DNA from: Basidiobolus meristosporus CBS 931.73
Taxonomy: Eukaryota > Fungi > Basidiobolomycota
Assembly (NCBI GenBank): GCA_002104905.1
Contig: MCFE01000402.1
Location: 1-64,000 of the forward strand
Length of the DNA: 64,000 bases
Reading direction: 5' to 3'
Under the pieces are notes generated by a model, which saw only the letters and a list, made by a program, of their open reading frames with translations, made no database searches and had not been told where the DNA came from. This document shows positions 30,901-58,236 of the stretch, piece by piece. Every line of letters starts with the position of its first letter. The first letter of the stretch is position 1. Both the position numbers and the translations under genes were made by a program.

Positions 30901-31378
30901 AGTTGAATCGCTTGTCCATAGTCTGCACGCTGTTGATGGTCACTTTGGCCAATGGAGATCACTTGCGGTTCACGAAGCCAGCTAGCAGTGGCCATATAGC
31001 TAGTACTTCAGTATCCAGCTACAACTTCAACCCGTTCCCTACTTAATGATAAACAAGGAGGTCGAGCTTGGTCACAAAAAAACAGAAGCACAGCTTCACC
31101 GCTTGAATTTTGGAACACTAATTCGGCGCTTGCTCTCACTGGAGCCTGCAGAGTTCCAATATGAATTTGGATTCAGGGACGCGAGATTTGTTCAGATGGA
31201 GCCTGGTGTAGCTGATCGGAAATATGATACCACTGGCGTTAAAGCACTAGACGATGACTCAGATTACTTCAGATAATGAGGATGAAGATGACGAGGACAC
31301 CAACCTAGAGGAGGCCGAGTTGTGGGGAAGGTTTGGCGGTCGTGGGCGATGGGACGTGGTAGATGGGGAAGATGGTAA
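30901..31378 (+). pseudogene. Array copy 1, degenerate A-type
   Basis: SIVCTLLMVTLANGDH is recognisable, but there is no ATG, an internal deletion, frameshifts and a shortened tail. Confidence 0.8.
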
Positions 31379-31805
31379 ACTACAGTGAACTTCACAATTT
31401 GCTCACAAGTCTGGATCATCACCAAGATTAGGCCTAATAAATGCCTAGAGCGATATGTGAAATGTAACATTAGCACTAACTGCTTTAATAAAGCCTACAA
31501 CAATTGTAAGACACTCAAATTCACTATCCTACCATTTCATAGCAATAATATACAGCTTTCAGCAAGGCCGCAAATGTTAAAGCAGTATTCACCTGCAGAT
31601 GACTGCCAAAGAATCACTTATCCCTACTATGCCTACTCATTAGGTAGTACTCTGGAGTTTTCTGGTAACAGAATAGCCACTTGCAACATTCAAAGGATCG
31701 TGAACTAATTCACTTTGCTGGCTACTTATTAGGCTACTCAAGCTTAGTGACCGATCTATATCCTATTTGTTGCGTTTATTATCCCAGCATTCTGATGACG
31801 GTGAG

Positions 31806-31882
31806 TATAATAAACCATATCTGAATTGAGTGAATTGAATGATAATGAGTCTAACTAAGCAATTCAACCAGAATAAAAGCGC
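31806..31882 (+). promoter_or_regulatory. Example of the three-part upstream module shared by most array copies (TATAATAA(A/G) ... ATGAG(T)CT ... ATAAAA)
   Basis: Seen at 31806/31845/31873, 38139/38171/38206, 53558/-/53625 and 55717/55751/55779, with 62-67 nt between the first and last element. Confidence 0.55.
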
Positions 31883-31948
31883 ATCAAAGAGTCTCCAAAA
31901 ACTCAGACTTGAGCTCTCCAAAGCAACTACACCCAAAAGTACCCGAAG

Positions 31949-32515
31949 ATGTTTCCTAAAATTGCCATTGTCGGTTCGCTCTTGATGGCCACCCTGGCCT
32001 ATGGTGACCATTTGAAGTTCGTTAAGCCAGCAACCAGCAACAATGCAGCCATTGCCTCCGTGTCCAACCATGAATTCAACCCATTTTACAACACTGGTCG
32101 TGGCGTCCTTATTCCAAACTACCTGATCAATAGGGACATTGAACTTGCACCAGAAGAAATCCGTCGACGCCACCTGAATATTGGTGCATTGATTGATCGC
32201 TTACTCTCGCTGAAGACCTTGGGGTTCGCAAACGAGTTTGAGTTCAAGGGGGCAAGATTCATTGACTTGGAGCCAGCCCATGAGTTTGTCACCAAGAATA
32301 CCGACATGAAGTATGGCACTACAAGTGATGAAGCAGTGAACGACAACTCCGACATTACTTCAGATAATGAGGATGAAGATGACGAGGACACCAACCCAGA
32401 GGAAGCTGAGCTATGGGGAAGATTTGGTGGTCGTGGGCGCTGGAGACGTGGCAGATGGGGCCGTGGACGATGGGGACGCGGTCGCTGGGGACGTGGTAGA
32501 TGGGGAAGATGGTAG
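31949..32515 (+). CDS. Array copy 2, A-type precursor (188 aa)
   Basis: Intact. MFPKIAIVGSLLMATLAYG signal; tail WGRFGGRGRWRRGRWGRGRWGRGRWGRGRWGRW. Confidence 0.9.
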   Translation: MFPKIAIVGSLLMATLAYGDHLKFVKPATSNNAAIASVSNHEFNPFYNTGRGVLIPNYLINRDIELAPEEIRRRHLNIGALIDRLLSLKTLGFANEFEFKGARFIDLEPAHEFVTKNTDMKYGTTSDEAVNDNSDITSDNEDEDDEDTNPEEAELWGRFGGRGRWRRGRWGRGRWGRGRWGRGRWGRW

Positions 32516-33150: not shown

Positions 33151-33718
33151 ATGTTTCCTAAAATTGCCATTGTCGGTTCGCTCTTGATGGCCACCCTGGC
33201 CTATGGTGACCATTTGAAGTTCGTTCAAGCCAGCAACCAGCAACAATGCAGCCATTGCCTCCGTGTCCAACCATGAATTCAACCCATTTTACAACACTGG
33301 TCATGGCATCCTCATTCCAAACTACCTGATAAATCGAGAGGTTGAGCTCGCACCAGAAGAAATCCGTCGACGCCACCTGAATATTGGTGCATTGATTGAT
33401 CGCTTACTCTCGCTGAAGACCTTGGGGTTCGCAAACGAGTTTGAGTTCAAGGGGGCAAGATTCATTGACTTGGAACCAGCCCATGAGTTTGTCACCAAGA
33501 ACACCGACATGAAGTATGGCACTACAAGTGATGAAGCAGTGAATGACAACTCCGACATTACTTCTGATAATGAGAATGAAGATAGCGAGGACACCAACCC
33601 AGAGGAAGCTGAGCTATGGGGAAGATTTGGCGGTCGTGGGCGCTGGAGACGTGGCAGATGGGGCCGTGGACGATGGGGACGCGGTCGCTGGGGACGTGGT
33701 AGATGGGGAAGATGGTAG
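33151..33718 (+). CDS. Array copy 3, A-type, +1 frameshift near 33226 (pseudogene or consensus error)
   Basis: Near-identical to copy 2 apart from one extra C in ttcgttCaag. Confidence 0.7.
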
Positions 33719-34765
33719 TCTTCAATGTGCTTCGCTCTTTACATTAATGGCGAAAACTCTCCCGGGGTTAGCGGCAAAGAAAAAACACCAGAGTCGAGTT
33801 TTGTAGCTAGGCTTGAATTGATCATACTAAATAAAGACTAGTCATCTATACTACAAGGCTATTGTCGTTTTCTGTACATTCCAACATAAAAACCTACCTC
33901 AATGCTAACCCCATACACAATGTCTATCATGAGGTCTTTTTGCTTACCGTTTCCTCGAATGCGGTCGGTTCGGAAGAAGATGCTGAATTCTGGCAAAGCA
34001 GTTGCTTTACCAAACGTTCAGTGATTTTCCAGTTTTTCCGGAAGAGGAGTCAGTTTTGAAGCGAAATGTAATATCGGCATTAGCACCAATAAAGCTCGAG
34101 TTTATGTTATGTAATGATATAGCATTCTCTTCCTGGTATTACAATTTCATGTTGCAATTAGATGAAGGTACATACTTTAAAACAGTGGCTTATATCGCTG
34201 CCAGTTGGGCTTGTAAGGGCACGAATGGAAATGGCTTCTTAGCCTTCCCACCATCAGAATCTGGGATGAACCATTGATCAATCGTGGCTTATGTTGCTCC
34301 ATAATTTTTCGTTGGTTTCTCGAGGGAAAATTAAAAAACATCGAATGCGTAATGTTTATCTCATAACATATATGCTCTCTGTGAAGAACATAAAAAGTAC
34401 TTTCTAATACCCGAATACGAATGGTGACTGCTCTTCAGCCCACATGAAATCCTGATAATATGGGAAGCTTCAGCACCGACATTCATCAATCATGCTTCGT
34501 AACAAAGCTCGCTGTAATGTTGCAATTTTCCGCAATGTTTCAAATGGATATATTTGGCACTGCGAAGCGTCATTACCACTGACATCGCCAGAGAGATTGT
34601 GTATCCTCCCAAGTACTGTAAATTTGAAAAAGTGAGCCCAAAAGCTTATGCATGATGAAATGGTGGACCCGGAGCTCAACATGTCACTTTATGCCTGATA
34701 AAAGAGCAATTATCAGGCTCTGGGAAGTAAGATTCGAAATTTCCAGACCAACAACAGCCTTGAGG

Positions 34766-35405
34766 ATGCTTCTTAAACTATCCATTTTCTATTCCTTGTT
34801 GATGACCACTCTGGCTTATAGGGACCACTTGAGGTTCTTTGAGCCAGTCCGTAGTAACAATGCGGCCATTGCCTCCGTGTCTAGCCGTGCATTCGGACCA
34901 TTCTACTATACCGATCAAGGTGTAGTCTTACCCTACTTCATGCTGGGTGAAAATGTCGATATCATCCCAGAGGAGGCTCGAGTTCGTCGTCTGAAGGTAG
35001 GGAGCGTAATCAAGCGTTTGCCACACCGCAGGTACAAGAAAGTGCCTCGGAAGCATGGGCACAGGTATATCAAGAAGGCTGATGTGGAGCCAAATACTGA
35101 GCCTGCCACTAGTGAGAATGACGTTGGGCCTATATCGGAGCCTAAAGCTGGGAAGCCCATTGATGAGCCCGCTAAAGAACCGAAACAAGAGCTTGTAGAA
35201 GAGCCAGCCACTGGTGAGACAGATACTAAGACCACTGGCAACAATGAGGCTGTAAAAAACAACCCAGACATCGCATCTGATGAAGACAGCGAGAATGATG
35301 CTGACTCTGAGGAAGCCAAGCTCGGGTAGATGGGGCCGTGGAAGAGGAAGACGTGGCCGCTGGGGACGTGGTAGAAGAGGTCGTGGCAGATGGGGAAGAT
35401 GGTAA
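34766..35405 (+). pseudogene. Array copy 4, divergent A/B intermediate; 2-bp loss at ~35324 puts the R/W tail out of frame
   Basis: The ORF stops at EEAKLG-stop (35329). The tail RWGRGRGRRGRWGRGRRGRGRWGRW continues in another frame to TAA at 35405. Confidence 0.7.
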
Positions 35406-35941
35406 ATGTGAGGTGGATTCAATCGCATCCTCACAAACAACCTATCCACAAGATATGCTTATTCCTGCCGATCTTTACACAACAAATAAAATTTAGGAGC
35501 GATCATACCCAGCTTTGTTTCAACTTTGATTTATCACATGTGTTAATATGATTTTGAAAATGGTCGGTTAACGCTGGGCTAATAAACAGCATACCCACAC
35601 CTCACGCTCGAGATACCAATGAAAAATATACCTTCAAGTATCTAAACTATAAGTTATCTTGGGAGCGTTAACGGTTTTCAGGCAGTACTTGCAATTCATA
35701 TATGTAGCGGACACCAATTATACCGTCAGTGTCTTATGAGCTGTGGGCGCGTATCCAAGGGTGAGAATTCCATGATGCGAAAGAATTCGGAGTCGTGAGT
35801 ATAATATAATAGGGTTAAGCAATTATAAGTGGCTTAATGAGCTTAATTGGTTGTTAAAGGTTTGTTGTGTATAAGTATGCCGCCTAGGCACTCTCAACAA
35901 TCAGACTAGAGCTTCAAAAAGCCCACACTAGCTACTCGAAG

Positions 35942-36536
35942 ATGCTTTTCAAACCTTCCGTTCTTTGCTCGCTACTGATGGCCACTATGGCCTATGGAGA
36001 TCACGCAAAGTTCTTCAAGCCAGCTGCCAGTAATACTATGGCCGTCGCTTCCGTATCTGACCACGGATTCAGTCCAATCGGCTACACTGATCAAGGTGTC
36101 ATCTTCCCCTACTACATGCTGGATGAAGATATCGAGATTACCCCAGAGGAGGCTCAGCTTCGTCGTCTGAAGATCGGGAGCATGGTGAAGCGTGCATCCC
36201 ATCACAAGTCCAAGAAGGTGTACAAGAAGCATAGCAAGAAACACCACAAGAAGACCAAGCATAAGGTTGGAGAGAAGACCGATGTAGAGCCAATGACTGA
36301 GCCAACCACAGGTGAGGGCGATGTTGATGCTCCTGTCAATGATGAGGCAGCCGAGGATGACTTGGATATTGCAGCTGACGAAGACAACGAGGATGACACT
36401 GACCCTGAGGAAGCCGAGCTCTGGGGTCGCTGGGGCCGTGGAAGGTGGGGACGCGGTCGGTGGGACGAGGCGCTGGGGACGTGGGAGATGGGGCCGTGGC
36501 AGATGGGGACGTGGTAGATGGGGAAGAAGATGGTAA
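35942..36536 (+). CDS. Array copy 5, B-type, two 1-bp deletions inside the tail (~36461-36471)
   Basis: MLFKPSVLCSLLMATMAYG signal and K/H tract. The tail switches frame at G and C homopolymers. Confidence 0.75.
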
Positions 36537-37111: not shown

Positions 37112-37709
37112 ATGATTTTCAAGCCTTCAGTTCTTTGCTCGCTACTAATGGCCACCCTGGCCTATGGCGATCATGCGAAGTTCTTCAAGCCAGCTGCCAG
37201 TGGCAGTGTGGCCGTCGCTTCCATATCCAACCACGGATTCAGTCCAATCCGCTACACTGATCAAGGTGTCATCTTCCCCTACTACATGCTGGATGAAGAT
37301 ATCGAGATTACCCCAGGAGGAGGCTCAGCTTCGTCGTCTGAAGATCGGCAGCATGGTGAAGCGTGCACCCCATCATAAGTACAAGAAGGTGTACAAGAAG
37401 CATAGCAAGAAGCACCACAAGAAGACTGAGCATAAGGTTGGAGAGAAGACCGATGTGGAGCCAATGACTGAGCCATCCCACGGTGAGGGCGATGTCGATG
37501 CTCCTGTCAATGATGAGGCAGCCGAGGATGACTTGGATATTGCAGCTGACGAAGACAACGAGGATGACACTGACCCTGAGGAAGCCGAGCTCTGGGGTCG
37601 CTGGGGCCGTGGAAGGTGGGGACGCGGTCGGTGGGGACGTGGCCGCTGGGGACGTGGGAGATGGGGCCGTGGCAGATGGGGACGGGGTAGATGGGGAAGA
37701 AGATGGTAA
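37112..37709 (+). CDS. Array copy 6, B-type, +1 G frameshift at ~37316
   Basis: Split across ORFs 37019-37378 and 37164-37709, which join into a normal B-type precursor. Confidence 0.75.
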
Positions 37710-38294: not shown

Positions 38295-38890
38295 ATGATT
38301 TTCAAACCTTCCGTCCTTTGCTCGCTACTAATGGCCACACTGGCCTATGGTGATCATGCGAAGTTCTTCAAGCCAGCTGACAGTAGCAATATGGCTGTCG
38401 CTTCCGTGTCTGACCACGGATTCAGTCCAATCCGCTACACTGATCAAGGTGTCATCTTCCCCTACTACATGCTGGATGAAGACATCGAGATTACCCCAGA
38501 GGAGGCTCAGCTTCGTCGTCTGAAGATCGGGAGCATGGTGAAGCGTGCACCCCATCATAAGTACAAGAAGGTGTACAAGAAGCATAGCAAGAAGCACCAC
38601 AAGAAGACTGAGCATAAGGTTGGAGAGAAGACCGATGTAGAGCCAATGACTGAGCCAACCACAGGTGAGGGCGATGTCGATGCTCCTGTCAATGATGAGG
38701 CAGCCGAGGATGACTTGGATATTGCAGCTGACGAAGACAACGAGGATGACACTGACCCTGAGGAAGCCGAGCTCTGGGGTCGCTGGGGCCGTGGAAGGTG
38801 GGGACGCGGTCGGTGGGGACGTGGCCGCTGGGGACGTGGGAGATGGGGTCGGGCAGATGGGGCCGTGGCAGATGGGGAAGAAGATGGTAA
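38295..38890 (+). CDS. Array copy 7, B-type, -1 frameshift in the tail (~38851)
   Basis: Normal up to (GRGRW)4, then reads ADGAVADG because one T is missing. Confidence 0.75.
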
Positions 38891-39505: not shown

Positions 39506-40099
39506 ATGCTTTTCAAACCTTCCGTTCTTTGCTCGCTACTGCTGGCCACCCTAGCCTATGGAGATCACGCAAAGTTCTTCGAGCCAGCTGCCAGTAGCAA
39601 TATGGCCGTCGCTTCCGTGTCTGACTACGGATTCAGTCCAATCCGCTACACTGATCAAGGTGTCATCTTCCCCTACTACATGCTGGATGAAGACATCGAG
39701 ATTACCTCGGAGGAGGCTCAGCTTCGTCGTCTGAAGATCGGGAGCATGGTGAAGCGGGCGCCCCATCACAAGTCCAAGAAGGTCTACAAGAAGGTGACCA
39801 AGAAGCACCACAAGAAGCACCACAAGACGACCAAGCATAAGGTTGGAGAGAAGACCGATGTAGAGCCAATGACTGAGCCAACCACAGGTGAGGTAGATGT
39901 CGATGCTCCTGTCAATGATGAGGCAGCGGTGAATGACCCAGATGTTGCAACTGACGAAGACAACGAGGATGACACTGACCCTGAGGAAGCCGAGCTCTGG
40001 GGTCGCTGGGGCCGTGGAAGGTGGGGACGCGGTCGGTGGGGACGTGGCCGCTGGGGCCGTGGCAGATGGGGACGGGGTAGATGGGGAAGAAGATGGTAA
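39506..40099 (+). CDS. Array copy 8, B-type precursor, 33-aa tail
   Basis: Intact; WGRW(GRGRW)5GRRW. Confidence 0.9.
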   Translation: MLFKPSVLCSLLLATLAYGDHAKFFEPAASSNMAVASVSDYGFSPIRYTDQGVIFPYYMLDEDIEITSEEAQLRRLKIGSMVKRAPHHKSKKVYKKVTKKHHKKHHKTTKHKVGEKTDVEPMTEPTTGEVDVDAPVNDEAAVNDPDVATDEDNEDDTDPEEAELWGRWGRGRWGRGRWGRGRWGRGRWGRGRWGRRW

Positions 40100-40607: not shown

Positions 40608-41264
40608 ATGATTTTCAAACCTTCCGTCCTTTACTCGCTACTGATGGCCACACTGGCCTATGGTGATCATGCGAAGTTCTTCAAGCCAGCTGCCAGTAGC
40701 AGTGTGGCCGTTGCTTCCGTATCTGACCACGGATTCAGTCCAATCCGCTACACTGATCAAGGTGTCGTCTTCCCCTACTACATGCTGGATGAAGATATCG
40801 AGATTACCCCAGAGGAGGCTCAGCTTCGTCGTCTGAAGATCGGGAGCATGGTGAAGCGTGCATCCCATCACGAGTCCAAGAAGGTGTACAAGAAGGTGAC
40901 CAAGAAGGTGACCAAGAAACATAGCAAGAAACACCACAAGAAGCACCATAAGAAGCACCACAAGAAACACCACAAGAAGACTAAGCATAAGGTTGGAGAG
41001 AAGACCGATGTGGAGCCAGTGACTGAGCCAACCCACGGTGAGGGTGATGTCGATGCTCCTGTCAATGATGAGGCAGCCGAGGATGACTTGGATATTGCAG
41101 CTGACGAAGACAACGAGGATGACACTGACCCTGAGGAAGCCGAGCTCTGGGGTCGCTGGGGCCGTGGAAGGTGGGGACGCGGTCGGTGGGGACGAGGCCG
41201 CTGGGGCCGTGGGAGATGGGGCCGTGGCAGATGGGGACGGGGTAGATGGGGAAGAAGATGGTAA
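40608..41264 (+). CDS. Array copy 9, B-type precursor, expanded K/H tract, 38-aa tail
   Basis: Intact; KKVY-KKVT-KKVT-KKHS-(KKHH)4; WGRW(GRGRW)6GRRW. Confidence 0.9.
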   Translation: MIFKPSVLYSLLMATLAYGDHAKFFKPAASSSVAVASVSDHGFSPIRYTDQGVVFPYYMLDEDIEITPEEAQLRRLKIGSMVKRASHHESKKVYKKVTKKVTKKHSKKHHKKHHKKHHKKHHKKTKHKVGEKTDVEPVTEPTHGEGDVDAPVNDEAAEDDLDIAADEDNEDDTDPEEAELWGRWGRGRWGRGRWGRGRWGRGRWGRGRWGRGRWGRRW

Positions 41265-41879: not shown

Positions 41880-42487
41880 ATGCTTTTCAAACCTTCCGTC
41901 CTTTACTCTCTACTGATGGCCACACTGGCCTATGGAGATCATGCGAAGTTCTTCAAGCAAGCTGCCAGTAGCAATATGGCCGTCGCTTCCGTGTCTGACT
42001 ACGGATTCAGTCCAATCCGCTACACTGATCAAGGTGTCATCTTCCCCTACTACATGCTGGATGAAGACATCGAGATTACTCCAGAGGAGGCTCAACTTCG
42101 TCGTCTGAAGATCGGGAGCATGGTGAAGCGGGCGCCCCATCACAAGTCCAAGAAGGTCTACAAGAAGGTGACCAAGAAGCATAGCAAGAAGCACCACAAG
42201 ACGACCAAGCATAAGGTTGGAGAGAAGACCGATGTAGAGCCAATGACTGAGCCAACCACAGGTGAGGGCGATGTCGATGCTTCTGTCAATGATGAGGCAG
42301 CCGAGGATGACTTGGATATTGCAGCTGACGAAGACAACGAGGATGACACTGACCCTGAGGAAGCCGAGCTCTGGGGTCGCTGGGGCCGTGGAAGGTGGGG
42401 ACGCGGTCGGTGGGGACGTGGCCGCTGGGGACGTGGGAGATGGGCCGTGGCAGATGGGGACGGGGTAGATGGGGAAGAAGATGGTAA
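41880..42487 (+). CDS. Array copy 10, B-type, -1 G frameshift in the tail (~42442)
   Basis: agatgggccg versus agatggggccg in sister copies. Confidence 0.75.
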
Positions 42488-42996: not shown

Positions 42997-43653
42997 ATGA
43001 TTTTCAAACCTTCCGTCCTTTACTCGCTACTGATGGCCACACTGGCCTATGGAGATCATGCGAAGTTCTTCAAGCCAGCTGACAGTAGCAATATGGCTGT
43101 CGCTTCCGTGTCTGACCATGGATTCAGTCCAATCCGCTACACTGATCAAGGTGTCATCTTCCCCTACTACATGCTGGATGAAGATATCGAGATTACCCCA
43201 GAGGAGGCTCAGCTTCGTCGTCTGAAGATCGGGAGCATGGTGAAGCGTGCACCCCATCAGGAGTCCAAGAAGGTGTACAAGAAGGTGTACAAGAAGGTGA
43301 CCAAGAAGGTGACCAAGAAACATAGCAAGAAACACCACAAGAAGCACCACAAGAAACACCACAAGGAGACTAAGCATAAGGTTGGAGAGAAGACCGATGT
43401 GGAGCCAGTGACTGAGCCAACCCACGGTGAGGGTGATGTCGATGCTCCTGTCAATGATGAGGCAGCCGAGGATGACTTGGATATTGCAGCTGACGAGGAC
43501 AACGAGGATGACACTGACCCTGAGGAAGCCGAGCTCTGGGGTCGCTGGGGCCGTGGAAGGTGGGGACGCGGTCGGTGGGGACGTGGCCGCTGGGGACGTG
43601 GGAGATGGGGCCGTGGCAGATGGGGACGGGGTAGATGGGGAAGAAGATGGTAA
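42997..43653 (+). CDS. Array copy 11, B-type precursor, expanded K/H tract, 38-aa tail
   Basis: Intact ORF. Confidence 0.9.
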   Translation: MIFKPSVLYSLLMATLAYGDHAKFFKPADSSNMAVASVSDHGFSPIRYTDQGVIFPYYMLDEDIEITPEEAQLRRLKIGSMVKRAPHQESKKVYKKVYKKVTKKVTKKHSKKHHKKHHKKHHKETKHKVGEKTDVEPVTEPTHGEGDVDAPVNDEAAEDDLDIAADEDNEDDTDPEEAELWGRWGRGRWGRGRWGRGRWGRGRWGRGRWGRGRWGRRW

Positions 43654-44238: not shown

Positions 44239-44835
44239 ATGATTTTCAAGCCTTCAGTTCTTTGCTCGCTACTAATGGCCACCCTGGCCTATGGAGATCA
44301 TACGAAGTTCTTCAAGCCAGCTGACAGTAGCAATATGGCCGTCGCTTCCGTGTCTGACCACGGATTCAGTCCAATCCGCTACACTGATCAAGGTGTCATC
44401 TTCCCCTACTACATGCTGGATGAAGACATTGAGATTACCCCAGAGGAGGCTCAACTTCGTCGTCTGAAGATCGGGAGCATGGTGAAGCGTGCACCCCATC
44501 ACAAGTACAAGAAGGTGACCAAGAAACATAGCAAGAAACACCACAAGAAGACTGAGCATAAGGTTGGAGAGAAGACCGATGTGGAGCCAGTGACAGAACC
44601 AACCACAGGTGAGGTTGATGTCGATGCTCCTGTCAATGATGAGGCAGCGGAGGCTGACCCGGATATTGCATCAGACGAGGACAACGAGGATGACACTGAC
44701 CCTGAGGAAGCCGAGCTCTGGGGTCGCTGGGGCCGTGGAAGGTGGGGACGCGGTCGGTGGGGACGTGGCCGCTGGGGACGCGGGAGATGGGGTCGTGGTA
44801 GATGGGGGCGGGGTAGGTGGGGAAGAAGATGGTAA
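44239..44835 (+). CDS. Array copy 12, B-type precursor
   Basis: Intact ORF, 38-aa tail. Confidence 0.9.
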   Translation: MIFKPSVLCSLLMATLAYGDHTKFFKPADSSNMAVASVSDHGFSPIRYTDQGVIFPYYMLDEDIEITPEEAQLRRLKIGSMVKRAPHHKYKKVTKKHSKKHHKKTEHKVGEKTDVEPVTEPTTGEVDVDAPVNDEAAEADPDIASDEDNEDDTDPEEAELWGRWGRGRWGRGRWGRGRWGRGRWGRGRWGRGRWGRRW

Positions 44836-45408: not shown

Positions 45409-46005
45409 ATGCTTTTCAAACCTTCCGTTCTTTGCTCGCTACTGATGGCCACCCTGGCCTATGGCGATCATGCGAAGTTTTTCAAGCCGGCTGACAGTAG
45501 CAGTGTGGCCGTCGCTTCCATATCCGACCACGGATTCAGTCCAATCCGCTACACTGATCAAGGTGTCATCTTCCCCTACTACATGCTGGATGAAGACATC
45601 GAGATTACTCCAGAGGAGGCTCAACTTCGTCGTCTGAAGATCGGCAGCATGGTGAAGCGTGCACCCCATCACAAGTACAAGAAGGTGACCAAGAAACATA
45701 GCAAGAAACACCACAAGAAGACTGAGCATAAGGTTGGAGAGAAGACCGATGTGGAGCCAATAATTGAACCAACCACCGGAGAGGTCGATGTCGATTCTCC
45801 TGTCAATGATGAGGCGGCGGTGGATGACCCGGATATTGCAGCTGACGAAGACAACGAGGATGACACTGACCCTGAGGAAGCCGAGCTCTGGGGTCGCTGG
45901 GGCCGTGGAAGGTGGGGACGCGGTCGGTGGGGACGTGGGAGATGGGGCCGTGGGAGATGGGGCCGTGGCAGATGGGGACGGGGTAGATGGGGAAGAAGAT
46001 GGTAA
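45409..46005 (+). CDS. Array copy 13, B-type precursor
   Basis: Intact ORF, 38-aa tail. Confidence 0.9.
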   Translation: MLFKPSVLCSLLMATLAYGDHAKFFKPADSSSVAVASISDHGFSPIRYTDQGVIFPYYMLDEDIEITPEEAQLRRLKIGSMVKRAPHHKYKKVTKKHSKKHHKKTEHKVGEKTDVEPIIEPTTGEVDVDSPVNDEAAVDDPDIAADEDNEDDTDPEEAELWGRWGRGRWGRGRWGRGRWGRGRWGRGRWGRGRWGRRW

Positions 46006-46589: not shown

Positions 46590-47186
46590 ATGCTTTTCAA
46601 ACCTTCCGTCCTTTACTCGCTACTGCTGGCCACCCTGGCCTATGGAGATCATACGAAGTTCTTCAAGCCAGCTGACAGTAGCATTATGGCCGTCGCTTCC
46701 GTGTCTGACCACGGATTCAGTCCAATCCGCTACACTGATCAAGGTGTCATCTTCCCCTACTACATGCTGGATGAAGACATCGAGATTACCCCAGAGGAGG
46801 CTCAGCTTCGTCGTCTGAAGATCGGGAGCATGGTGAAGCGTGCACCCCATCACAAGTACAAGAAGGTGACCAAGAAACATAGCAAGAAGCACCACAAGAA
46901 GACTGAGCATAAGGTTGGAGAGAAGACCGATGTGGAGCCAATGACTGAGCCAACCCACGGTGAGGGCGATGTCGATGCTCCTGTCAATGATGAGGCAGCG
47001 GTGGATGACCCAGATGTTGCAACTGACGAAGACAACGAGGATGACACTGACCCTGAGGAAGCCGAGCTCTGGGGTCGCTGGGGCCGTGGAAGGTGGGGAC
47101 GCGGTCGGTGGGGACGAGGCCGCTGGGGACGTGGGAGATGGGGCCGTGGCAGATGGGGACGGGGTAGATGGGGAAGAAGATGGTAA
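46590..47186 (+). CDS. Array copy 14, B-type precursor
   Basis: Intact ORF, 38-aa tail. Confidence 0.9.
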   Translation: MLFKPSVLYSLLLATLAYGDHTKFFKPADSSIMAVASVSDHGFSPIRYTDQGVIFPYYMLDEDIEITPEEAQLRRLKIGSMVKRAPHHKYKKVTKKHSKKHHKKTEHKVGEKTDVEPMTEPTHGEGDVDAPVNDEAAVDDPDVATDEDNEDDTDPEEAELWGRWGRGRWGRGRWGRGRWGRGRWGRGRWGRGRWGRRW

Positions 47187-47770: not shown

Positions 47771-48352
47771 ATGCTTTTCAAACCTTCCGTTCTTTGCTCG
47801 CTACTGCTGGCCACCCTAGCCTATGGAGATCACGCGAAGTTCTTTAAGCCAGCTGCCAGTAGCAGTGTGGCCGTCGCTTCCGTGTCTGACCACGGATTCA
47901 GTCCAATCCGCTACACTGATCAAGGTGTCATCTTCCCCTACTACATGCTGGATGAAGATATCGAGATTACCCCAGAGGAGGCTCAGCTTCGTCGTCTGAA
48001 GATCGGGAGTATGGTGAAGCGGGCGCCCCATCACAAGTACAAGAAGGTGACCAAGAAGCATAGCAAGAAGCATCACAAGAAGACCGAGCATGAGGTTGGA
48101 GAGAAGACGGATATGGAGCCAATGACTGAACCAACCACCGGTGAGGTTGATGTCGATGCTCCTGTCAATGATGAGGCAGCCGAGGATGACTTGGATATTG
48201 CAGCTGACGAAGACAACGAGGATGACACTGACCCTGAGGAAGCCGAGCTCTGGGGTCGCTGGGGCCGTGGAAGGTGGGGACGCGGTCGGTGGGGCCGTGC
48301 GAGATGGGGCCGTGGCAGATGGGGACGAGGTAGATGGGGAAGAAGATGGTAA
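47771..48352 (+). CDS. Array copy 15, B-type precursor, 33-aa tail with one G-to-A change
   Basis: Intact; WGRWGRGRWGRGRWGRARWGRGRWGRGRWGRRW. Confidence 0.9.
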   Translation: MLFKPSVLCSLLLATLAYGDHAKFFKPAASSSVAVASVSDHGFSPIRYTDQGVIFPYYMLDEDIEITPEEAQLRRLKIGSMVKRAPHHKYKKVTKKHSKKHHKKTEHEVGEKTDMEPMTEPTTGEVDVDAPVNDEAAEDDLDIAADEDNEDDTDPEEAELWGRWGRGRWGRGRWGRARWGRGRWGRGRWGRRW

Positions 48353-48915
48353 ATCCGAAATGGATTCAATCAAGTCCTCAAAATTCTTGCCACAAGAACA
48401 GTTCTGGTACATGTATTGATATGATTAGGCAGTGCTCACCTTTGCCAACCATTATACAATAAAGTAGATTTTAGGAGTGACTGTTCCTCTCGATGATTCG
48501 TAACGATCATTTCAGGAATTATGACCTGTCATGCTTTCTGTATCGCAGAATGGGTTAGCAATAATCTCCAGTGTATAAACATGTCAATTCGCTTCATTCA
48601 TTTGGTAAGGTGATACAGTATCATAATAGTGTTTGTTATCTATGTTGGTAATCGCGTGTCTGACATCTATTCCATGGAATATTAGATCATTTTAAAAAAT
48701 ATCGACCTGTGTTGGTGGCCTTTTAAGTCGCGAATGATTTTGTGGTTTCTGAATTTGATGTGGCTTACGAGGTTAGATTTGAAAGAACGATATAATAAGG
48801 TGATGCTAGCATTTAGTTCTCAATGAGCTTATTTTGGTGCTAGAATTTGCTCATGAAAGCACCACATCTGTTCTCCCAAGAAGCAGATCTGAATTTTTTC
48901 AAGAGAAACGGAAAT

Positions 48916-49477
48916 ATGCAAACCTTCAATTCTCTGCCCCCTATTGATGGCAACTCTGGCTTATGGAGACCACTTGAAATTTATCAAGCCTTCCGCTAGT
49001 AATAATGCGGCCATTGCCTCCGTGTCCAACCGCGAATTCAACCCATTCCACAACACTGGCCATGGCGTCCTCATTCCTAACTACCTGATCAATAGGGAGA
49101 TTGAACTCGCACCAGAAGAAGTCCGCCTGCGTCGCTTGAATATTGGTGCATTGATTGAGAGCATACTCTCACTGAAAGCCTTGGGGTTCCCAAATGAGTT
49201 TGAGTTCAAGGGTGCAAGATTCATTAGCTTCGAGCCAACCGGTATATTCGACACAGGCGAGACTGGCATGAAATATGACACTACCAGTGATGAGGCAGTT
49301 GAAGATAACCCCGATATTACCGCTGATGATGAGGATGAGGATGAAGATGCCACTGACCCAGAAGAGGCCGAGCTATGGGGCAGGTTTGGTGGCTGTGGAC
49401 GTTGGAGACGAGGAAGATGGGGCCGTGGCAGGTGGCGTCGCGGCCGCTGGGGACGTCGTAGATGGGGAAGATGGTAG
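48916..49477 (+). pseudogene. Array copy 16, A-type; small deletion after the ATG removes the start of the signal peptide
   Basis: ATG C AAA CCT versus ATG CTT TTC AAA CCT in other copies; first in-frame Met is MATLAYG. The TATA-like element is also changed (ATGAAA), and the tail contains a Cys. Confidence 0.6.
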
Positions 49478-50171: not shown

Positions 50172-50741
50172 ATGATGTTTCTCAAGTCTTCCGTTTTCTC
50201 CTCGTTCCTAATGGTCACTTTAGCTTACGGGGACCGTTCAATATTCTTCAAGCCAGCGACCAGCAACAATGCGGCCATTGCCTCCGTGTCCAACCGCGAA
50301 TTCAACCCATTCCACAACACTGGCCATGGCATCCTCATTCCAAACTACCTGATAAATCGAGAGGTTGAGCTCGCACCAGAAGAAATCCGTCGACGCCACC
50401 TGAATATTGGTGCATTGGTTGATCGCTTACTCTCGCTGAAGACCTTGGGGTTCGCAAACGAGTTTGAGTTCAAGAGGGCGAGATTCATTGACTTGGAGCC
50501 AGCCCATGAATTTGTCACCAAGAACACCGACATGAAGTATGGCACTACAAGTGATGAAGCAGTGAATGACAACTCCGACATTACTTCTGATAATGAGGAT
50601 GAAGATGACGAGGACACCAACCCAGAGGAAGCTGAGCTATGGGGAAGATTTGGTGGTCGTAGACGTTGGGGGCGTGGCAGATGGGGTCGCGGAAGGTGGG
50701 GACGCGGTCGCTGGGGACGTGGAAGATGGGGAAGATGGTAG
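50172..50741 (+). CDS. Array copy 17, A-type precursor (189 aa)
   Basis: Intact; tail WGRFGGRRRW(GRGRW)4GRW. Confidence 0.88.
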   Translation: MMFLKSSVFSSFLMVTLAYGDRSIFFKPATSNNAAIASVSNREFNPFHNTGHGILIPNYLINREVELAPEEIRRRHLNIGALVDRLLSLKTLGFANEFEFKRARFIDLEPAHEFVTKNTDMKYGTTSDEAVNDNSDITSDNEDEDDEDTNPEEAELWGRFGGRRRWGRGRWGRGRWGRGRWGRGRWGRW

Positions 50742-51375: not shown

Positions 51376-51942
51376 ATGTTTCCTAAAATTGCCATTGTCG
51401 GTTCGCTCTTGATGGCCACCCTGGCCTATGGCGACCATTTTAAGTTCTTCAAGCCAGCGACCAGCAACAATGCGGCCATTACCTCCGTGTCCAACCACGA
51501 ATTCAACCCATTCCACAACACTGGCCATGGCATCCTCATTCCAAACTACCTGATAAATCGAGAGGTTGAGCTCGCACCAGAAGAAATCCGTCGACGCCAC
51601 CTGAATATTGGTGCATTGATTGATCGCTTACTCTCGCTGAAGACCTTGGGGTTCGCAAACGAGTTTGAGTTCAAGAGGGCAAGATTCATTGACTTGGAAC
51701 CAGCCCATGAGTTTGTCACCAAGAACACCGACATGAAGTATGGCACTACAAGTGATGAAGCAGTGAACGACAACTCTGACATGACTTCTGACAATGTGGA
51801 TGAAGATGACGAGGACACCAACCCAGAGGAAGCTGAGCTATGGGGAAGATTTGGTGGTCGTAGACGTTGGGGACGTGGTAGATGGGGTCGTGGACGATGG
51901 GGACGCGGTCGCTGGGGACGTGGTAGATGGGGAAGATGGTAA
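51376..51942 (+). CDS. Array copy 18, A-type precursor (188 aa)
   Basis: Intact ORF. Confidence 0.9.
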   Translation: MFPKIAIVGSLLMATLAYGDHFKFFKPATSNNAAITSVSNHEFNPFHNTGHGILIPNYLINREVELAPEEIRRRHLNIGALIDRLLSLKTLGFANEFEFKRARFIDLEPAHEFVTKNTDMKYGTTSDEAVNDNSDMTSDNVDEDDEDTNPEEAELWGRFGGRRRWGRGRWGRGRWGRGRWGRGRWGRW

Positions 51943-52512: not shown

Positions 52513-53079
52513 ATGTTTCCTAAAATTGCCATTGTCGGTTCGCTCTTGATGGCCACCCTGGCCTATGGTGACCATTTGAAGTTCGTTAAGCCAGCAACCA
52601 GCAACAATGCAGCCATTGCCTCCGTGTCCAACCACGAATTCAACCCATTCCACAACACTGGCCATGGCATCCTCATTCCAAACTACCTGATAAATCGAGA
52701 GGTTGAGCTCGCACCAGAAGAAATCCGTCGACGCCACCTGAATATTGGTGCATTGATTGATCGCTTACTCTCGCTGAAGACCTTGGGGTTCGCAAACGAG
52801 TTTGAGTTCAAGAGGGCGAGATTCATTGACTTGGAGCCAGCCCATGAGTTTGTCACCAAGAACACCGACATGAAGTATGGCACTACAAGTGATGAAGCAG
52901 TGAACGACAACTCTGACATGACTTCTGACAATGTGGATGAAGATGACGAGGACACCAACCCAGAGGAAGCTGAGCTATGGGGAAGATTTGGTGGTCGTAG
53001 ACGTTGGGGACGTGGCAGATGGGGTCGCGGAAGGTGGGGACGCGGTCGCTGGGGACGTGGTAGATGGGGAAGATGGTAG
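52513..53079 (+). CDS. Array copy 19, A-type precursor (188 aa)
   Basis: Intact ORF. Confidence 0.9.
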   Translation: MFPKIAIVGSLLMATLAYGDHLKFVKPATSNNAAIASVSNHEFNPFHNTGHGILIPNYLINREVELAPEEIRRRHLNIGALIDRLLSLKTLGFANEFEFKRARFIDLEPAHEFVTKNTDMKYGTTSDEAVNDNSDMTSDNVDEDDEDTNPEEAELWGRFGGRRRWGRGRWGRGRWGRGRWGRGRWGRW

Positions 53080-53710
53080 ACTGCAATGTGCTTCGTTCTT
53101 TGCCCCAATGGTGCAAACAATTTCTTGGATGGCAGCTAAAGAACGCCTGTGTTATATTTTCAAGCAAAGATTGATCCAGTTGTACTAAATAAAGACTATT
53201 CATCAACGCAACAGTACAATCATTGTTATTTGAAGATTTCAATAAATGTTCTTGATATAAAAGACACCTCAATGGTAACTCGATATACAATATTCAACAT
53301 AAGACCTTTCTCCTTATGAGTACCTTAAATGCTATAGTAATATATATGTGACTACAAAGCCTATCCGTGAAACTACAAAAAATTTACTCTCCCGGTTGTA
53401 CTCCAAGATTTACCAGCAGCTCAACGTTTGCTTGCGACATTTAAATGACTGAGATATCGATGCATTTACCTGATTACTCGTTTGTCTACTCAATCTTGGT
53501 ATTCAATCTATTTCTTACTTCCTGTGCTTACTTTCCCTACGCCTTGAATACGATGAGTATAATAAGGCATATATGAGTTGAGAGAGCTGACTGATAACGA
53601 GTCTAACTAATCAAATCAGTCAGAATAAAAGCACACCAAAGAGTCTCAAAAAATTCAGATTTGAGCTCTCGAAAGCAAGTGCAAGTACCTCAACTGACAA
53701 GTTACTAAGA

Positions 53711-54277
53711 ATGTTTCCTAATATTTCTATTGCCTGCACAATACTGATGGCCACCCTGGCCTATGGCGACCATTTTAAGTTCTTCAAGCCAGCGACCAGC
53801 AACAATGCGGCTATTGCCTCCGTGTCCAACCACGGATTCAACCCATTCCACAACACTGGCCATGGCATCCTCATTCCTAACTACCTGATCAATAGAGAGA
53901 TTGAACTCGCACCAGAAGAAGTCCGCCTGCGTCGCTTGAATATTGGTGCATTGATTGATCGCTTACTCTCGCTGAAGACCTTGGGGTTCCCGGATGAATT
54001 TGAGTTCAAGGGGGTAAGATTCATTGACTTGGAGCCAGCCCATGAGTTTGTCACCAAGAACACCGACATGAAGTATGGCACTACAAGTGACGAGGCAGTG
54101 AATGACAACTCCGACATTACTTCAGATAATGAGGATGAAGATGACGAGGACACCAACCCAGAGGAAGCTGAGCTATGGGGAAGATTTGGCGGTCGTAGAC
54201 GTTGGGGGCGTGGCAGATGGGGTCGCGGAAGGTGGGGACGCGGTCGCTGGGGACGTGGTAGATGGGGGAGATGGTAG
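53711..54277 (+). CDS. Array copy 20, A-type precursor (188 aa)
   Basis: Intact ORF. Confidence 0.9.
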   Translation: MFPNISIACTILMATLAYGDHFKFFKPATSNNAAIASVSNHGFNPFHNTGHGILIPNYLINREIELAPEEVRLRRLNIGALIDRLLSLKTLGFPDEFEFKGVRFIDLEPAHEFVTKNTDMKYGTTSDEAVNDNSDITSDNEDEDDEDTNPEEAELWGRFGGRRRWGRGRWGRGRWGRGRWGRGRWGRW

Positions 54278-55841
54278 ACTACAATGTGCCGCATTCTTAG
54301 CTCCAATGGTGGAAACACTTCGTGGGATAGCAGCCAAAGAACATTTATGCTCTATTTTCAAGTAAAGATTGTACCGGTCACACTAAATAAAGACATCCCA
54401 ATTACGCAATAGTACAATCACTGTTATTTGAATACTTTGGCATATGCTATCGGCATGGCTAGCTATAAAAATGCACACCAATGCTTAGAACACCGCAAGC
54501 CAATGCAGATACAAGATCAGAGCGAAATGGGGATTCTACAGCAATTGAGGAGGAGGAGGCCGATTCTGGGGCAAAGTGCTTACAAAATTCCGCCAAGATT
54601 GACCGTGGCCACAAGTATCGTAGTGTCAGAGGGTATAAACGTGGGCATGGACATAAACACGGGAACAGGACATAGGTAGAGACGCAGACATGAACACAAA
54701 TGCGGGCAACGGTAGGAGTATGAGTATGAGTATAAGTATGAGCTCAGTCAATAATGATAAATCACCTCCCTTATCGTGAGTGAAAGTAAAGCTGAATTTA
54801 TCAACGACCTTCAATTGCCCCACCGGTAAGTACAGCAAATGCAAATGTCGATTTTCACTCTACAATAAACTGCATTCAGCTGTGACCACTCCATTTGTTT
54901 AAAAAGATTGGGAGAAAACAGAATGGAATTGTTGCGAATTGGCTAAATTTCTGGGTGCTGTTTTAAAATGCATCACCGTATGCAACATTGACCAATATAA
55001 TACAGCGTTCCTCAACACAACTCTAAGATATTGACCAACTTTCAAATCCAAAGAGTGCAATAATTATTTTCATTAGTAAACAATATTTGCCGGTGTAAAC
55101 AAGGTAGCTATAGATATTCACGTAGAGATTGTGAAACCACTGGCGAATTCTGCAATAATGGTATTAACATCGCCAACAAAATTTGTTTCCAAACTCCAAG
55201 TGATTATTTGTTGAGACAGAATGGAATATATTTTTCGATTCATATCAATGTTGCAAATTCATTTCATCGAAATGGAATGCTCAAAATACCACAGCACTGT
55301 GGCAAGGGTCTATGTGCGATATGTCGACTCCAATTTATGATTGTTTGAATTGGAGTTATGAGATATAGGATTAGCCAATTCCTCAAATATGAGATGAAAA
55401 ATAGATACAATATACTACTATGTGCATCCTTACAAAGACCGAGTTACCGTAATACAAAAGACTTTTCAACAAGCTTTACAAATATTGATATTGCTTGATG
55501 GGGCGCATAGTATGTGGCCAAAACATTATCCGCACGTCCGATGAATAAGGATCCAAACGGGATCATCATTACTGGGAAAGCATAGCCGACATTCAAATAA
55601 TTGCAAACCCCCTCTACATACCAGAGCTCCTACTGTACTACTCGGCTTAGAGATATAATTCCTGTCGTTTTAGCAAACGAGAAAGTTAAATAAACAATAA
55701 GTGAGGTAGGTCGAAGTATAATAAACTAAGAGTGTAAAAGCCAACTACCAATGAGTCTAAATAAGCGATTCGTTTGAGATAAAAGCGCACAAAGTAACCT
55801 CCAGAAAGTCAGTAGTAAACAGCTCCAACAAATAACCAAAG

Positions 55842-56411
55842 ATGTTTCCTAAACTCTCCTTTGTCTGCTCGCTCTTGATGGCCACCCTGACACATGGTGA
55901 CCATACGAAGTTCTTCAAGCCAGCCGCCAGCAACAGTGCGGCTATTGCTTCCGTGTCCAACCACGAATTCAACCCATTCCATAACACTGGCCATGGCGTC
56001 CTCATTCCTAACTACCTGATCAATAGGGAGATTGAACTCGCACCAGAAGAAGTCCGCCTGCGTCGCTTGAATATTGGTGCATTGATTGATCGCTTACTCT
56101 CGCTGAAGACCTTGGGGTTCCCGGATGAGTCCGAGCTCAAGGGTGCAAGATTCATTAGCTTCGAGCCAACCGGTATATTTGCCACAGGCGAGACTGGCAT
56201 GAAATATGGCACTACCAGTGATGAGGCAGTTGAAGATAACCCCGATATTACCGCTGATGATGAGGATGGGGATGAAGATGCCACTGACCCAGAGGAGGCC
56301 GAGCTATGGAGAAGATTTGGTGGCCGTGGACGTTGGGGACGAGGCAGATGGGGTCGCGGACGGTGGGGACGTGGTAGAAGGGGCAGATGGGGAAGATGGG
56401 GTAGATGGTAG
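55842..56411 (+). CDS. Array copy 21, A-type precursor (189 aa)
   Basis: Intact; tail WRRFGGRGRWGRGRWGRGRWGRGRRGRWGRWGRW. Confidence 0.9.
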   Translation: MFPKLSFVCSLLMATLTHGDHTKFFKPAASNSAAIASVSNHEFNPFHNTGHGVLIPNYLINREIELAPEEVRLRRLNIGALIDRLLSLKTLGFPDESELKGARFISFEPTGIFATGETGMKYGTTSDEAVEDNPDITADDEDGDEDATDPEEAELWRRFGGRGRWGRGRWGRGRWGRGRRGRWGRWGRW

Positions 56412-57406
56412 GTTTTGGTAAAGAGGCACTGCTGCGAACTTGGCCAATATAAAAGTAGGGCTGACAAAGGAGCATTATAGTTCCCTATAAACAGTATCGA
56501 TGTATTCTATGGCCGAATTCGTTCCATACCTTCTGAATAAATGTGCTTGCCGCAAATATAGGCAGTGTAACAATCATATTTCATGGATTTTCCATTTCTC
56601 AGTAGCAGATATGGGCGTACGCATCATTTTGGCAATGACAAGGTAGCTCAACTTCCAACTGGTGATGAAGAAGCTTGATTGAAAGTTAAGCAATATGTTG
56701 AGTCTCCTGTCAACAGCAATGAAGCTACAGGTGATAACACTGGTAGTACTAGATAACCTTCAATATACTGTGTTCTGCTCCACTTGTAAGAAGGGATGGA
56801 TGTGATAGGCTCTGGCGGGCTTGACAGGAGAGCAATTCAAACGTATATCAAGCGTCAGCCATATCGTCACGAAGCGGTCAGATGAAAGAGTGACTATGTT
56901 TCTAAATGGCTCAATTTATGAATGTTGTTTCAAAATGTATCACCGTATAAGATTCTAAGAGATTGAAAAGTTTCCAAACCCAAGGAGTGCTAAGGTTACT
57001 ATTACCGTATAGGGTACAAAACAAAGACCCTTGGTTGTGACAATGGGATTACTCCACCTCTTGTTTCTTATACGACCCACTTCGAAAGTAAAATAAACAA
57101 CAGTGTGAGGATCCATACTACACCATCGATCTCCTTCAGAGTGCGATAAAGCATTGAACAACGGAGCGACAGTGTTGGTCAAGCATACATTTTCAATCGC
57201 CAATGGGCATTATTGATGGCATAGTTGATATTTTCGGTTATTTCACACGAGTGCTCATTGCAGTATGGAGCACGGTACTTTATTCAATCTACAAAAGTCT
57301 ATTTTACAGAAGAGAGGCTAGATAGATTGATGGAGTTGAAAGAAACAACTATAAAAGAGCAAGCCACTTGCACTCTGGCTAATCAGTAAATCAGTCCTCT
57401 TCGAAT

Positions 57407-57961
57407 ATGCTTCATAAATTCACCATCGTTTGCGCTCTCTTAATGGCCACCATGGCTTATGGCGACCACCTTCAACCTGTTAACCCAGCTGTTGGGAGTA
57501 GCGTGGTTAGTGCCGTGGCATCATCCCGTACGGACTCTAGCCCATTTCTCTACAAAGGGAGATATTTCGAGCTAGATAACATGCTCGAAATCACGCCTGA
57601 GGAAGCCCAATTGCGCCGCCTGAAAATGAAAAAAATCCAGAAAAGTAAGCACATCGTCAAACACAAGAAAAAGAAGTACAAAGGCATCACCCGCTTTGCT
57701 CGCCCGGATGAGCCGATGACTGAGGACATTGGGCCTGAAATGGGTGTCTTCAACGACGAGGCTGCTGATGACGATGCTGACAACGACGACAATGCAGAGG
57801 AGACCGAACTCTGGCGCAGATTTGGCCGATTTGGAAGATTTGGTCACTTTCGCCCATACAGAAGATTTGGCCCTTTCCGCAGATATGGTCGATTCAGAAG
57901 ATTTGGGCCTTTCCGAAGATTTGGACCCTTTAGACGTTACGGTAGATTTTATCGCTGGTAA
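57407..57961 (+). CDS. Array copy 22, divergent C-type precursor with Arg/Phe/Tyr hexamer tail (184 aa)
   Basis: MLHKFTIVCALLMATMAYG-DH signal, ITPEEAQLRRLK, Lys-rich tract, acidic spacer, AEETEL, then the 49-aa tail WRRFGRFGRFGHFRPYRRFGPFRRYGRFRRFGPFRRFGPFRRYGRFYRW. Confidence 0.88.
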   Translation: MLHKFTIVCALLMATMAYGDHLQPVNPAVGSSVVSAVASSRTDSSPFLYKGRYFELDNMLEITPEEAQLRRLKMKKIQKSKHIVKHKKKKYKGITRFARPDEPMTEDIGPEMGVFNDEAADDDADNDDNAEETELWRRFGRFGRFGHFRPYRRFGPFRRYGRFRRFGPFRRFGPFRRYGRFYRW

Positions 57962-58236
57962 CTGAGATTGTTGGTGAATGTATGGAGGTTTCGACGAATG
58001 GCACTGGCCTTTGCCCAAGATTCTTCCAATAAATGATATCAAATATCCATACATCACTATTGGCTGATTCTTATATGAATGCCCGCTGCTGAGGTGGGTT
58101 AGTGGGATGTCCTTGGCTGTACCGCTCGCACTATGCTGTCCCCAACTGGGTGCAATGGGTTTCATATTATGTACTAGAAGACACATTTCATCTGCAACAA
58201 GCATAGATCTGGCAACAGATAGTTTATAAAAGCGTG

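Follow-up and report, generated by a model that had tools for sequence, protein, structure and literature searches.

Animals are well known to possess genes for linear cationic peptides, and in frog dermaseptin-type and conotoxin precursors a conserved prepro region is joined to a cargo that varies. To our knowledge, the ribosomal defence peptides of fungi are almost all cysteine-stabilised (defensin-like or AFP/PAF), and we know of no family of linear Arg/Trp peptides in these organisms. Here we describe a candidate for such a family from Basidiobolus meristosporus CBS 931.73. It is encoded by an array of 22 gene copies in the 64,000-nucleotide stretch that we analysed (the window), which is part of an 81,282-nt contig, MCFE01000402.1. 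In the dominant copy types, the predicted product carries a secretory leader, a long acidic spacer, and a C-terminal tail made of Gly-Arg-Gly-Arg-Trp (GRGRW) units. We judge the chance to be about even (roughly 0.5) that these genes encode Basidiobolus-specific secretory prepro-proteins that deliver polycationic peptides, probably against competing microbes.

Comparison with described precursors and peptides

The layout of a signal peptide, an acidic pro-piece, and a cationic C-terminal peptide is shared with frog dermaseptin-superfamily and spider linear cytolytic precursors. This layout, to which a preliminary description of the locus had drawn attention, is real, with a signal-like leader in the place of the signal peptide, and is conserved across two Basidiobolus species. 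Dermaseptin-type systems also resemble the array in their multi-copy genes, their conserved prepro region, and a cargo that varies between paralogues and species. They differ from it in using a Lys-Arg junction rather than PEEx(Q/E)L. The array in turn has two cargo modules per precursor, its cargo is a Gly/Arg/Trp repeat rather than an amphipathic helix, and its producer is a fungus. No sequence relation to dermaseptin-type precursors emerged among the 5.8 billion and 1.84 billion proteins searched. Honeybee apidaecin precursors, which score 0.59 in a feature-based protein atlas, likewise place acidic spacers containing Glu, Ala, and Pro before each cationic peptide. Their spacers are removed via Arg-Arg (RR) sites and a dipeptidyl peptidase acting stepwise on X-Ala/X-Pro pairs, an alternation that the array lacks, and there is no homology.

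The NLP/CNC (caenacin) genes of Caenorhabditis elegans (PMC2453101) also lie in tandem clusters and encode small secreted proteins, whose products consist almost entirely of Gly, an aromatic residue, and Arg. A sister subfamily on another B. meristosporus contig, whose proteins end in CDWGC, is especially near to them in composition. The nematode genes have neither PEExxL junctions nor a long acidic spacer, they lack the second basic block of the array, and no nematode protein was among the matches at E <= 0.001 in our exhaustive profile search.

The tail itself recalls indolicidin, tritrpticin, the lactoferricin core, and synthetic (RW)n peptides in its Arg/Trp dominance and high net charge. 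Arg/Trp-rich peptides are established membrane-active antimicrobials, with action expected on anionic membranes through cation-pi contacts and interfacial anchoring by Trp (PMC6017362). The natural members are about 13 residues long and are cut from cathelicidin or lactoferrin, whereas the array tails of 33-38 residues are 37% Gly and strictly periodic. A cathelin-like pro-domain was not found, with no Pfam domain above threshold and no relative among PDB sequences.

Finally, Kex2-processed repeat proteins (KEPs), a group that includes alpha-factor and ustiloxin-type precursors, are secreted fungal precursors with a repeated C-terminal peptide region (PMC7329392). Regular RR sites are present in copy 22, alone within the array, and in one protein of Basidiobolus ranarum (P0005), and the tails of the dominant types A and B (20 of the 22 copies) have no dibasic separators. 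Pfam MF_alpha and MF_alpha_N gave no match at E <= 1, and the alpha-factor feature score in the atlas is 0.65. Set beside these systems, and as read from sequence, the periodic GRGRW product, the two cargo modules, the PEExxL junction, and the 22-copy array are the unusual traits of the Basidiobolus genes.

Architecture of the array and its precursors

A tblastn search together with a listing of open reading frames (ORFs) places all 22 copies on the plus strand between positions 30901 and 57961, at one copy per 1.0-1.3 kb and with introns absent from each, which bears out the earlier count, orientation, and lack of introns. Fourteen copies are intact, comprising six of type A, seven of type B, and one of type C. 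In the other eight, a frame break, a stop codon, or the loss of the start codon disrupts the gene. Type A (copies 2, 3, and 16-21) encodes 188-189 residues and type B (copies 5-15) encodes 193-218; copy 1 is a decayed first copy, copy 4 is divergent, and copy 22 is a divergent last copy (type C). Over the first 210 gene bases, identity is 88-98% within type B, 78-97% within type A, about 67% between the two types, and 52-58% between copy 22 and the rest. Because copies 2-3 match copies 18-19 at 90-97% identity, the sequences suggest that a two-copy block was duplicated.

The anatomy of the precursor was read from an alignment of the 14 intact copies. The arrangement given in the preliminary description holds for these; the other eight copies are not intact ORFs, and apart from this point the earlier observation is essentially right. 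The leader of 19 residues looks like a typical cleavable signal peptide: Lys at position 4 makes its n-region basic, its hydrophobic core spans about 13 residues, and A-x-G precedes the putative cut. It generally ends with AYG followed by DH, as had been reported, and the exceptions are copy 21 (THG) and copy 17 (AYG followed by DR). No further hydrophobic segment occurs beyond it. An N-terminal pro-piece of about 54 residues then closes with the motif (T/A)PEE-x-(Q/R)-(L/R), and the form of this first junction that is common to the family is TPEExQLRR. The middle block begins with RR(L)(K/N)IG. Its character differs by type: a predicted helix (residues 68-88) in type A, a His/Lys-rich stretch with a net charge of +11 to +23 in type B, and a Lys-rich stretch with a net charge of +15 in type C. 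An acidic spacer (net -16 to -21 in the intact copies) leads to the second junction, previously given as EEAEL, which stands as PEEAEL except in copy 22, where it is EETEL.

Every intact tail ends in RW and a stop codon, and the lengths of 33, 34, 38, and 49 residues agree with the range of 33-49 first reported. Type A tails (33-34 residues) consist of 13-14 Arg, 7 Trp, 12 Gly, and 1 Phe. Type B tails have 33 or 38 residues, and a recount of the longer form reproduced exactly the earlier figures of 15 Arg, 9 Trp, and 14 Gly. The type C tail (49 residues) contains 18 Arg, 12 Phe, 4 Tyr, 2 Trp, and 8 Gly, with RR at each sixth residue flanking FGPF and YGRF units. Tail net charge is +13 to +15 in the array and +18 in the Arg/Phe tail of copy 22. 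RR occurs once or twice per A or B tail, and no dibasic site separates the GRGRW units. Across eleven family types, which are not independent of one another, a spacer of -11 to -22 always precedes a tail of +9 to +26. The two charges correlate weakly (r = -0.34, n = 11), so we do not use their co-variation as evidence. Arg, aromatic residues (Trp, Phe, or Tyr), and Gly together make up 77-100% of the tail across the family. An AlphaFold2 model of type A, built with a 14-sequence alignment, predicts no fold (mean predicted local distance difference test score, or pLDDT, of 45); it places a helix at residues 4-18, in the leader, and leaves the spacer and the tail as coil.

In copies 9 and 11 the His/Lys block is 20 residues longer than in the other B copies and contains extra KKVT/KKHH units. 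The middle cargo therefore seems to vary in length by repeat gain as well.

Selection on the coding sequence

Ratios of non-synonymous to synonymous divergence (dN/dS) were summed over all paralogue pairs, which are non-independent. For the whole coding sequence the ratio is 0.21 in type A and 0.18 in type B, and for the tail it is 0.08 and 0.03, respectively, which makes the tail the most constrained segment; despite the non-independence, these ratios are clear. Among the intact copies, synonymous divergence is 0.18-0.27 and non-synonymous divergence is 0.04-0.07. Inside any one tail, every GRGRW unit draws differently on the four Gly and six Arg codons, such that pairs of units differ at about 3.5 of 15 bases. 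Because all of these differences are silent, the periodic peptide is kept by selection and is not a product of recent DNA slippage. In type-B units, the coding sequences are 93.5% identical versus 81% for the intergenic spacer DNA. Outside the type-B coding sequence, conservation extends over about 80 nt before the ATG and to an AATAAA about 105 nt after the stop codon. A TATA-like element is located about 90 nt upstream. By these sequence measures, the intact copies are real, selected coding sequences.

The preliminary description took the array to be amplified for gene dosage. This is plausible for the seven intact B and six intact A copies, whose tails are near-identical. However, broken copies account for a third of the array, and another contig from the same assembly is two copies short. 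This contig (MCFE01001163.1, 1-12468; hereafter L001) matches window positions 52512-63064 at 99.2% identity over 10.5 kb and positions 48262-51951 at about 90%, and it holds the right end of the array together with its flank (dolichol kinase and Arf). The broken copies and this deficit point to birth-and-death turnover instead of clean amplification. With two copies fewer than the window, L001 is either an alternative haplotype or a recent duplicate, and array length is therefore polymorphic.

A family restricted to Basidiobolus

Relatives in the databases come only from B. meristosporus CBS 931.73 and B. ranarum, and each of them carries the annotation "hypothetical protein". Word-indexed searches of 5.8 billion proteins, which included a mixed-species profile, and an exhaustive profile search with HMMER over 1.84 billion cluster representatives found no relative outside Basidiobolus, one metagenome look-alike excepted. 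Pfam returned nothing above threshold for four window proteins and seven relatives, and PDB sequences searched with one protein and with the family profile gave chance-level matches alone (E > 0.4). A Joint Genome Institute (JGI) metagenome scan with the window alignment produced 343 pattern matches, none of them a relative. Best scores in the feature-based atlas were 0.59-0.73, which we treat as leads only. The literature searched contained no 8-residue piece of the tails and no link between Basidiobolus and such peptides. These results agree with the first impression that no characterised family is alike, and a profile search of the kind that the preliminary description had proposed as a check, run here on the 1.84 billion representatives, matched no characterised family. 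Because no test of membership in a known family came out in its favour, the sequences are best classified as a new family, confined to the genus and of an already known functional kind.

The B. ranarum proteins retain the leader, the N-terminal pro-piece, TPEExQLRR, the basic middle block, the acidic spacer, and PEETEL, and it is their cargo that varies. Four of them (P0006, P0012, P0016, and P0017) have an Arg/Phe/Gly tail ending in DCGDC, and P0005 has an Arg/Tyr/Asp tail in which regular RR sites separate HDYDRY units. In P0018, a Lys-rich six-Cys domain (residues ~150-229) stands in place of an Arg/aromatic tail. P0013 has no second module and ends after a strongly amphipathic cationic helix with a hydrophobic moment of 0.59. 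On a B. ranarum contig (L002), three family members adjoin housekeeping genes in the order DnaJ, Pmp3, UCH, and then the family genes. UCH and DnaJ also lie directly before the array in the window, where the block is inverted relative to L002:1539-6964. Because the family is syntenic with UCH-DnaJ in both species, the locus predates their split, and comparison of the sequences indicates that the cargo has been remodelled since.

Two look-alikes deserve mention. The feature look-alikes of P0018 are small disulfide-rich toxins, at weak scores of at most 0.67. The metagenome protein noted above (P0011; L004:453-803, on a 954-nt contig of JGI metagenome 3300039722) has 116 residues. Its signal peptide is combined with an Asp/Asn-rich acidic stretch and a WGRG/YWGRG/GYGY tail, the PEE junction is missing, and the layout may have been invented there independently.

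Proposed function and alternatives

From the demonstrated gene family, its architecture and charge arithmetic, its lineage restriction, its synteny, and its purifying selection, it is reasonable to speculate on how the precursors might work, and the interpretation in the preliminary description is partly supported. A constant front part (signal peptide, pro-piece, and TPEExQLRR) would carry cationic cargo in one segment or two, with an acidic stretch and a PEEx(Q/E)L junction ahead of each, and in the array the selected product would be the C-terminal (GRGRW)n tail. The precursor would first enter the endoplasmic reticulum, and during transit the acidic spacer would mask the polycation within the same chain. 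A secretory-pathway endoprotease would then cut at the PEExxL(x)RR/GR junctions or immediately behind them. Kexin is the obvious candidate where RR is present, and a kexin-compatible RR or x-RR occurs at module 1 in nearly all members and at module 2 in copies 21 and 22 and in most B. ranarum proteins. WGR comes next at the second junction of types A and B, and release there would call for either a cut at a single basic residue or an as yet unknown enzyme with specificity for PEExxL; no other step of the scheme is as weak. The freed Arg/aromatic peptides might finally bind anionic membranes or polymers of other cells. Judging from chemistry and ecology alone, the likeliest targets would be bacteria that compete with this gut- and dung-dwelling fungus. 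The fungus is an amphibian gut symbiont that shares its habitat with gut and dung bacteria, and occasional infections of tissue occur (PMC7466969).

Several findings favour this scheme. The architecture is kept in the 14 intact copies and in the B. ranarum proteins, and in B. ranarum the constant front part is joined to unrelated cationic cargoes. The leader looks like a signal peptide, purifying selection is strongest on the tail, the GRGRW repeat is preserved at the peptide level, sequence flanking the type-B genes is conserved, and every type has an acidic spacer ahead of its cationic tail. Several points weigh against it. We know of no protease that has been established as cutting at PEExxL. 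Cleavage by kexin at the second junction of types A and B is doubtful because the sequence there is GR and no dibasic pair is present. Eight of the 22 copies are broken, the type A middle helix is weakly amphipathic (moment 0.24), some B. ranarum tails contain many Asp residues, and the atlas look-alikes (alpha-factor and apidaecin precursors) are leads only, with scores below 0.75. Furthermore, the proposal in the preliminary description that the acidic spacer neutralises the tail is sound insofar as the two charges are opposite and of similar size, but the same near balance, along with the Arg/aromatic/Gly composition, suits an uncleaved polyampholyte equally well.

If the prepropeptide interpretation is true, then a gut fungus carries dozens of genes for a class of peptides undescribed in fungi. 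The precursor would be one with two cargoes, and its conserved PEExxL junction would point to an undescribed processing step. The family would also represent a testable convergence with frog and arthropod peptide precursors, would provide a natural (GRGRW)n scaffold for comparison with synthetic (RW)n peptides, and might be a factor in the way that Basidiobolus shapes gut communities.

Of the alternatives, the one that survives best, which we still consider unlikely, is that the proteins are secreted uncut and act as a material such as a glue or matrix. Their acidic and Arg/aromatic/Gly blocks would form a block polyampholyte that self-coacervates through charge and cation-pi contacts, for example in adhesive capilliconidia, ballistic spores, or the cell wall. 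Arg, aromatic residues, and Gly are the sticker-and-spacer composition of condensate-forming sequences, and this composition is kept across the family. The opposite, similar-sized charges within one chain, the absence of a predicted fold with coil for the spacer and tail, and a copy number that fits a bulk product are also in keeping with it. A more doubtful, narrower version is that these uncut sticker-and-spacer chains condense outside the cell as a coacervate glue or matrix such as the capilliconidia adhesive. On the other side, the junction motifs are the most conserved elements across species apart from the leader, which suggests that they are recognition sites. The replacement of the cargo by a Cys-rich domain (P0018) or by a lone amphipathic helix (P0013) would be odd for a material, and within subtypes the exact tail sequence is strongly constrained beyond its composition. 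If an adhesive role is true, then the family would exhibit an extracellular Arg/aromatic condensate chemistry, a fungal counterpart of marine-worm cement.

It is also rather improbable, in our estimation, that the precursors are KEPs whose tails are cut at basic sites into many peptides of 4-6 residues, which would serve as signals or as cores for further modification. Copy 22, with RR at each sixth residue, and P0005, with its RR-separated HDYDRY units, look the part, and alpha-factor precursors are among the weak look-alikes in the atlas. In a survey of 1461 fungi, B. meristosporus CBS 931.73 is the richest in KEPs (43), and a Tyr/Asp-rich KEP type is found only in Basidiobolus (PMC7329392). 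However, dibasic sites are missing between the GRGRW units of the dominant A and B tails, and the neighbouring ORFs tested are housekeeping genes that include no modifying enzyme. For the latter comparison we considered ten flanking ORF fragments (the flanking genes contain introns and were partly reconstructed) and the annotated neighbours on L001 and L002. These are all housekeeping genes, and no DUF3328/UstYa oxidase or other tailoring gene of the dikaritin type was seen among them.

Arg/Trp-rich sequences are efficient cell-penetrating peptides, and perhaps the tail enters or lyses cells of the gut epithelium or of arthropod carriers as a host- or vector-directed effector. We regard this as less probable still. 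The habitat in animal guts and the occasional infection of tissue (PMC7466969) would suit such a role, as would the quick turnover of the family between species. Yet no feature of the sequence indicates an animal target, and the tails of B. meristosporus show conservation, not diversification. The sequence cannot separate a host-directed from an antimicrobial role.

Scarcely credible is a non-functional repeat, in which a decaying tandem duplication retains its ORFs through youth alone: the eight broken copies, the difference in copy number between two contigs of one assembly, and the erratic public gene models might suggest it, but the excess of synonymous over non-synonymous divergence (0.18-0.27 versus 0.04-0.07), the tail dN/dS of 0.03-0.08, and the retention of the family at a syntenic locus in a second species argue strongly to the contrary.

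Individual copies, annotation, and neighbouring genes

The coordinates and condition of each copy are collected in Table 1. Same-strain short-read contigs span 33707-35961, the region of copy 4, with no difference from the assembly, and because of this agreement the frame break in copy 4 is supported. At 33226, short-read contigs from the same strain are without the extra base of the assembly. Their depth is about twice the single-copy level, and 97%-identical paralogues are a possible source. The break in copy 3 is uncertain because the contigs may derive from such paralogues. A search for RNA runs listed none, and the read runs that contain array sequence cover intergenic DNA evenly and are therefore genomic.

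Table 1. Copies of the array and adjoining genes, by position in the window
Feature	Position	Strand	Description
Copy 1	30901..31378	+	Decayed type-A-like pseudogene; no ATG, internal stops, frame breaks, tail remnant
Copy 2	31949..32515	+	Intact type A, 188 aa, 33-aa tail
Copy 3	33151..33718	+	Type A; frame break, 1 extra base at 33226 (possibly assembly error)
Copy 4	34766..35405	+	Divergent, own basic middle block; frame break just before Arg/Gly/Trp tail
Copy 5	35942..36536	+	Type B; 13 extra bases in tail near 36467
Copy 6	37112..37709	+	Type B; 1 extra base at 37316
Copy 7	38295..38890	+	Type B; 1 base missing in tail near 38851
Copy 8	39506..40099	+	Intact type B, 197 aa, 33-aa tail
Copy 9	40608..41264	+	Intact type B, 218 aa, 38-aa tail, expanded His/Lys middle block
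Copy 10	41880..42487	+	Type B; 1 base missing in tail near 42441
Copy 11	42997..43653	+	Intact type B, 218 aa
Copy 12	44239..44835	+	Intact type B, 198 aa, 38-aa tail (15 R, 9 W, 14 G)
Copy 13	45409..46005	+	Intact type B
Copy 14	46590..47186	+	Intact type B
Copy 15	47771..48352	+	Intact type B, 33-aa tail
Copy 16	48911..49477	+	Type A; start codon absent before leader
Copy 17	50172..50741	+	Intact type A
Copy 18	51376..51942	+	Intact type A
Copy 19	52513..53079	+	Intact type A
Copy 20	53711..54277	+	Intact type A
Copy 21	55842..56411	+	Intact type A variant; tail begins WRR
Copy 22	57407..57961	+	Intact type C; Lys-rich middle block, 49-aa Arg/Phe/Tyr tail, RR each six residues
UCH and DnaJ genes flanking array	25241..29882	-	Same genes beside family members in B. 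ranarum

Whichever function proves correct, the public annotation of the locus is unreliable and the family is unnamed. Public gene models over window positions 35942-48352 (P0003, P0015, P0021, P0026, and P0027) exhibit the problem. Several fuse two or three neighbouring copies into proteins of 351-579 residues, P0003 bridges the frame break of copy 6 by an intron, and some array models begin within the leader.

Other ORFs in the array were considered as genes and rejected. The long Pro/Arg/His-rich ORFs on the minus strand (window 32119-56467) and the Gly/Asp/Val-rich ORFs in the +1 and +2 frames over the tails turn up again in every copy and are by-products of the repeat codons. An in-frame ATG located 31 codons upstream in type B was likewise discarded as the start. 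Copy 8 has GTG at that position, and types A and C have stop codons upstream. The dN/dS of the upstream stretch in type B is 0.55 versus 0.18 for the coding sequence. On this sequence evidence, the true start is the Met of the leader.

The neighbouring ORFs that were tested encode a P-type ATPase, a TPR protein, Ndc1, a mitochondrial carrier, UCH, DnaJ, dolichol kinase, Arf, and a WDR26-like protein, all of which are housekeeping functions.

Two further sets of Basidiobolus sequences resemble the array. The sister subfamily of B. meristosporus (contig L003) has two tandem copies at 7934-8383 and 10722-11171, and each of its shorter proteins runs from a leader through an acidic piece to PEEAQL, followed by a Gly/Tyr/Arg/Trp tail of 48 residues with the CDWGC ending. 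In a second Basidiobolus sample, short contigs are 85-95% identical to tails and coding regions at window positions 42800-48500, and one of them reads through RGRW and the stop codon into a different 3' flank. The family is therefore present in the second sample in diverged form.

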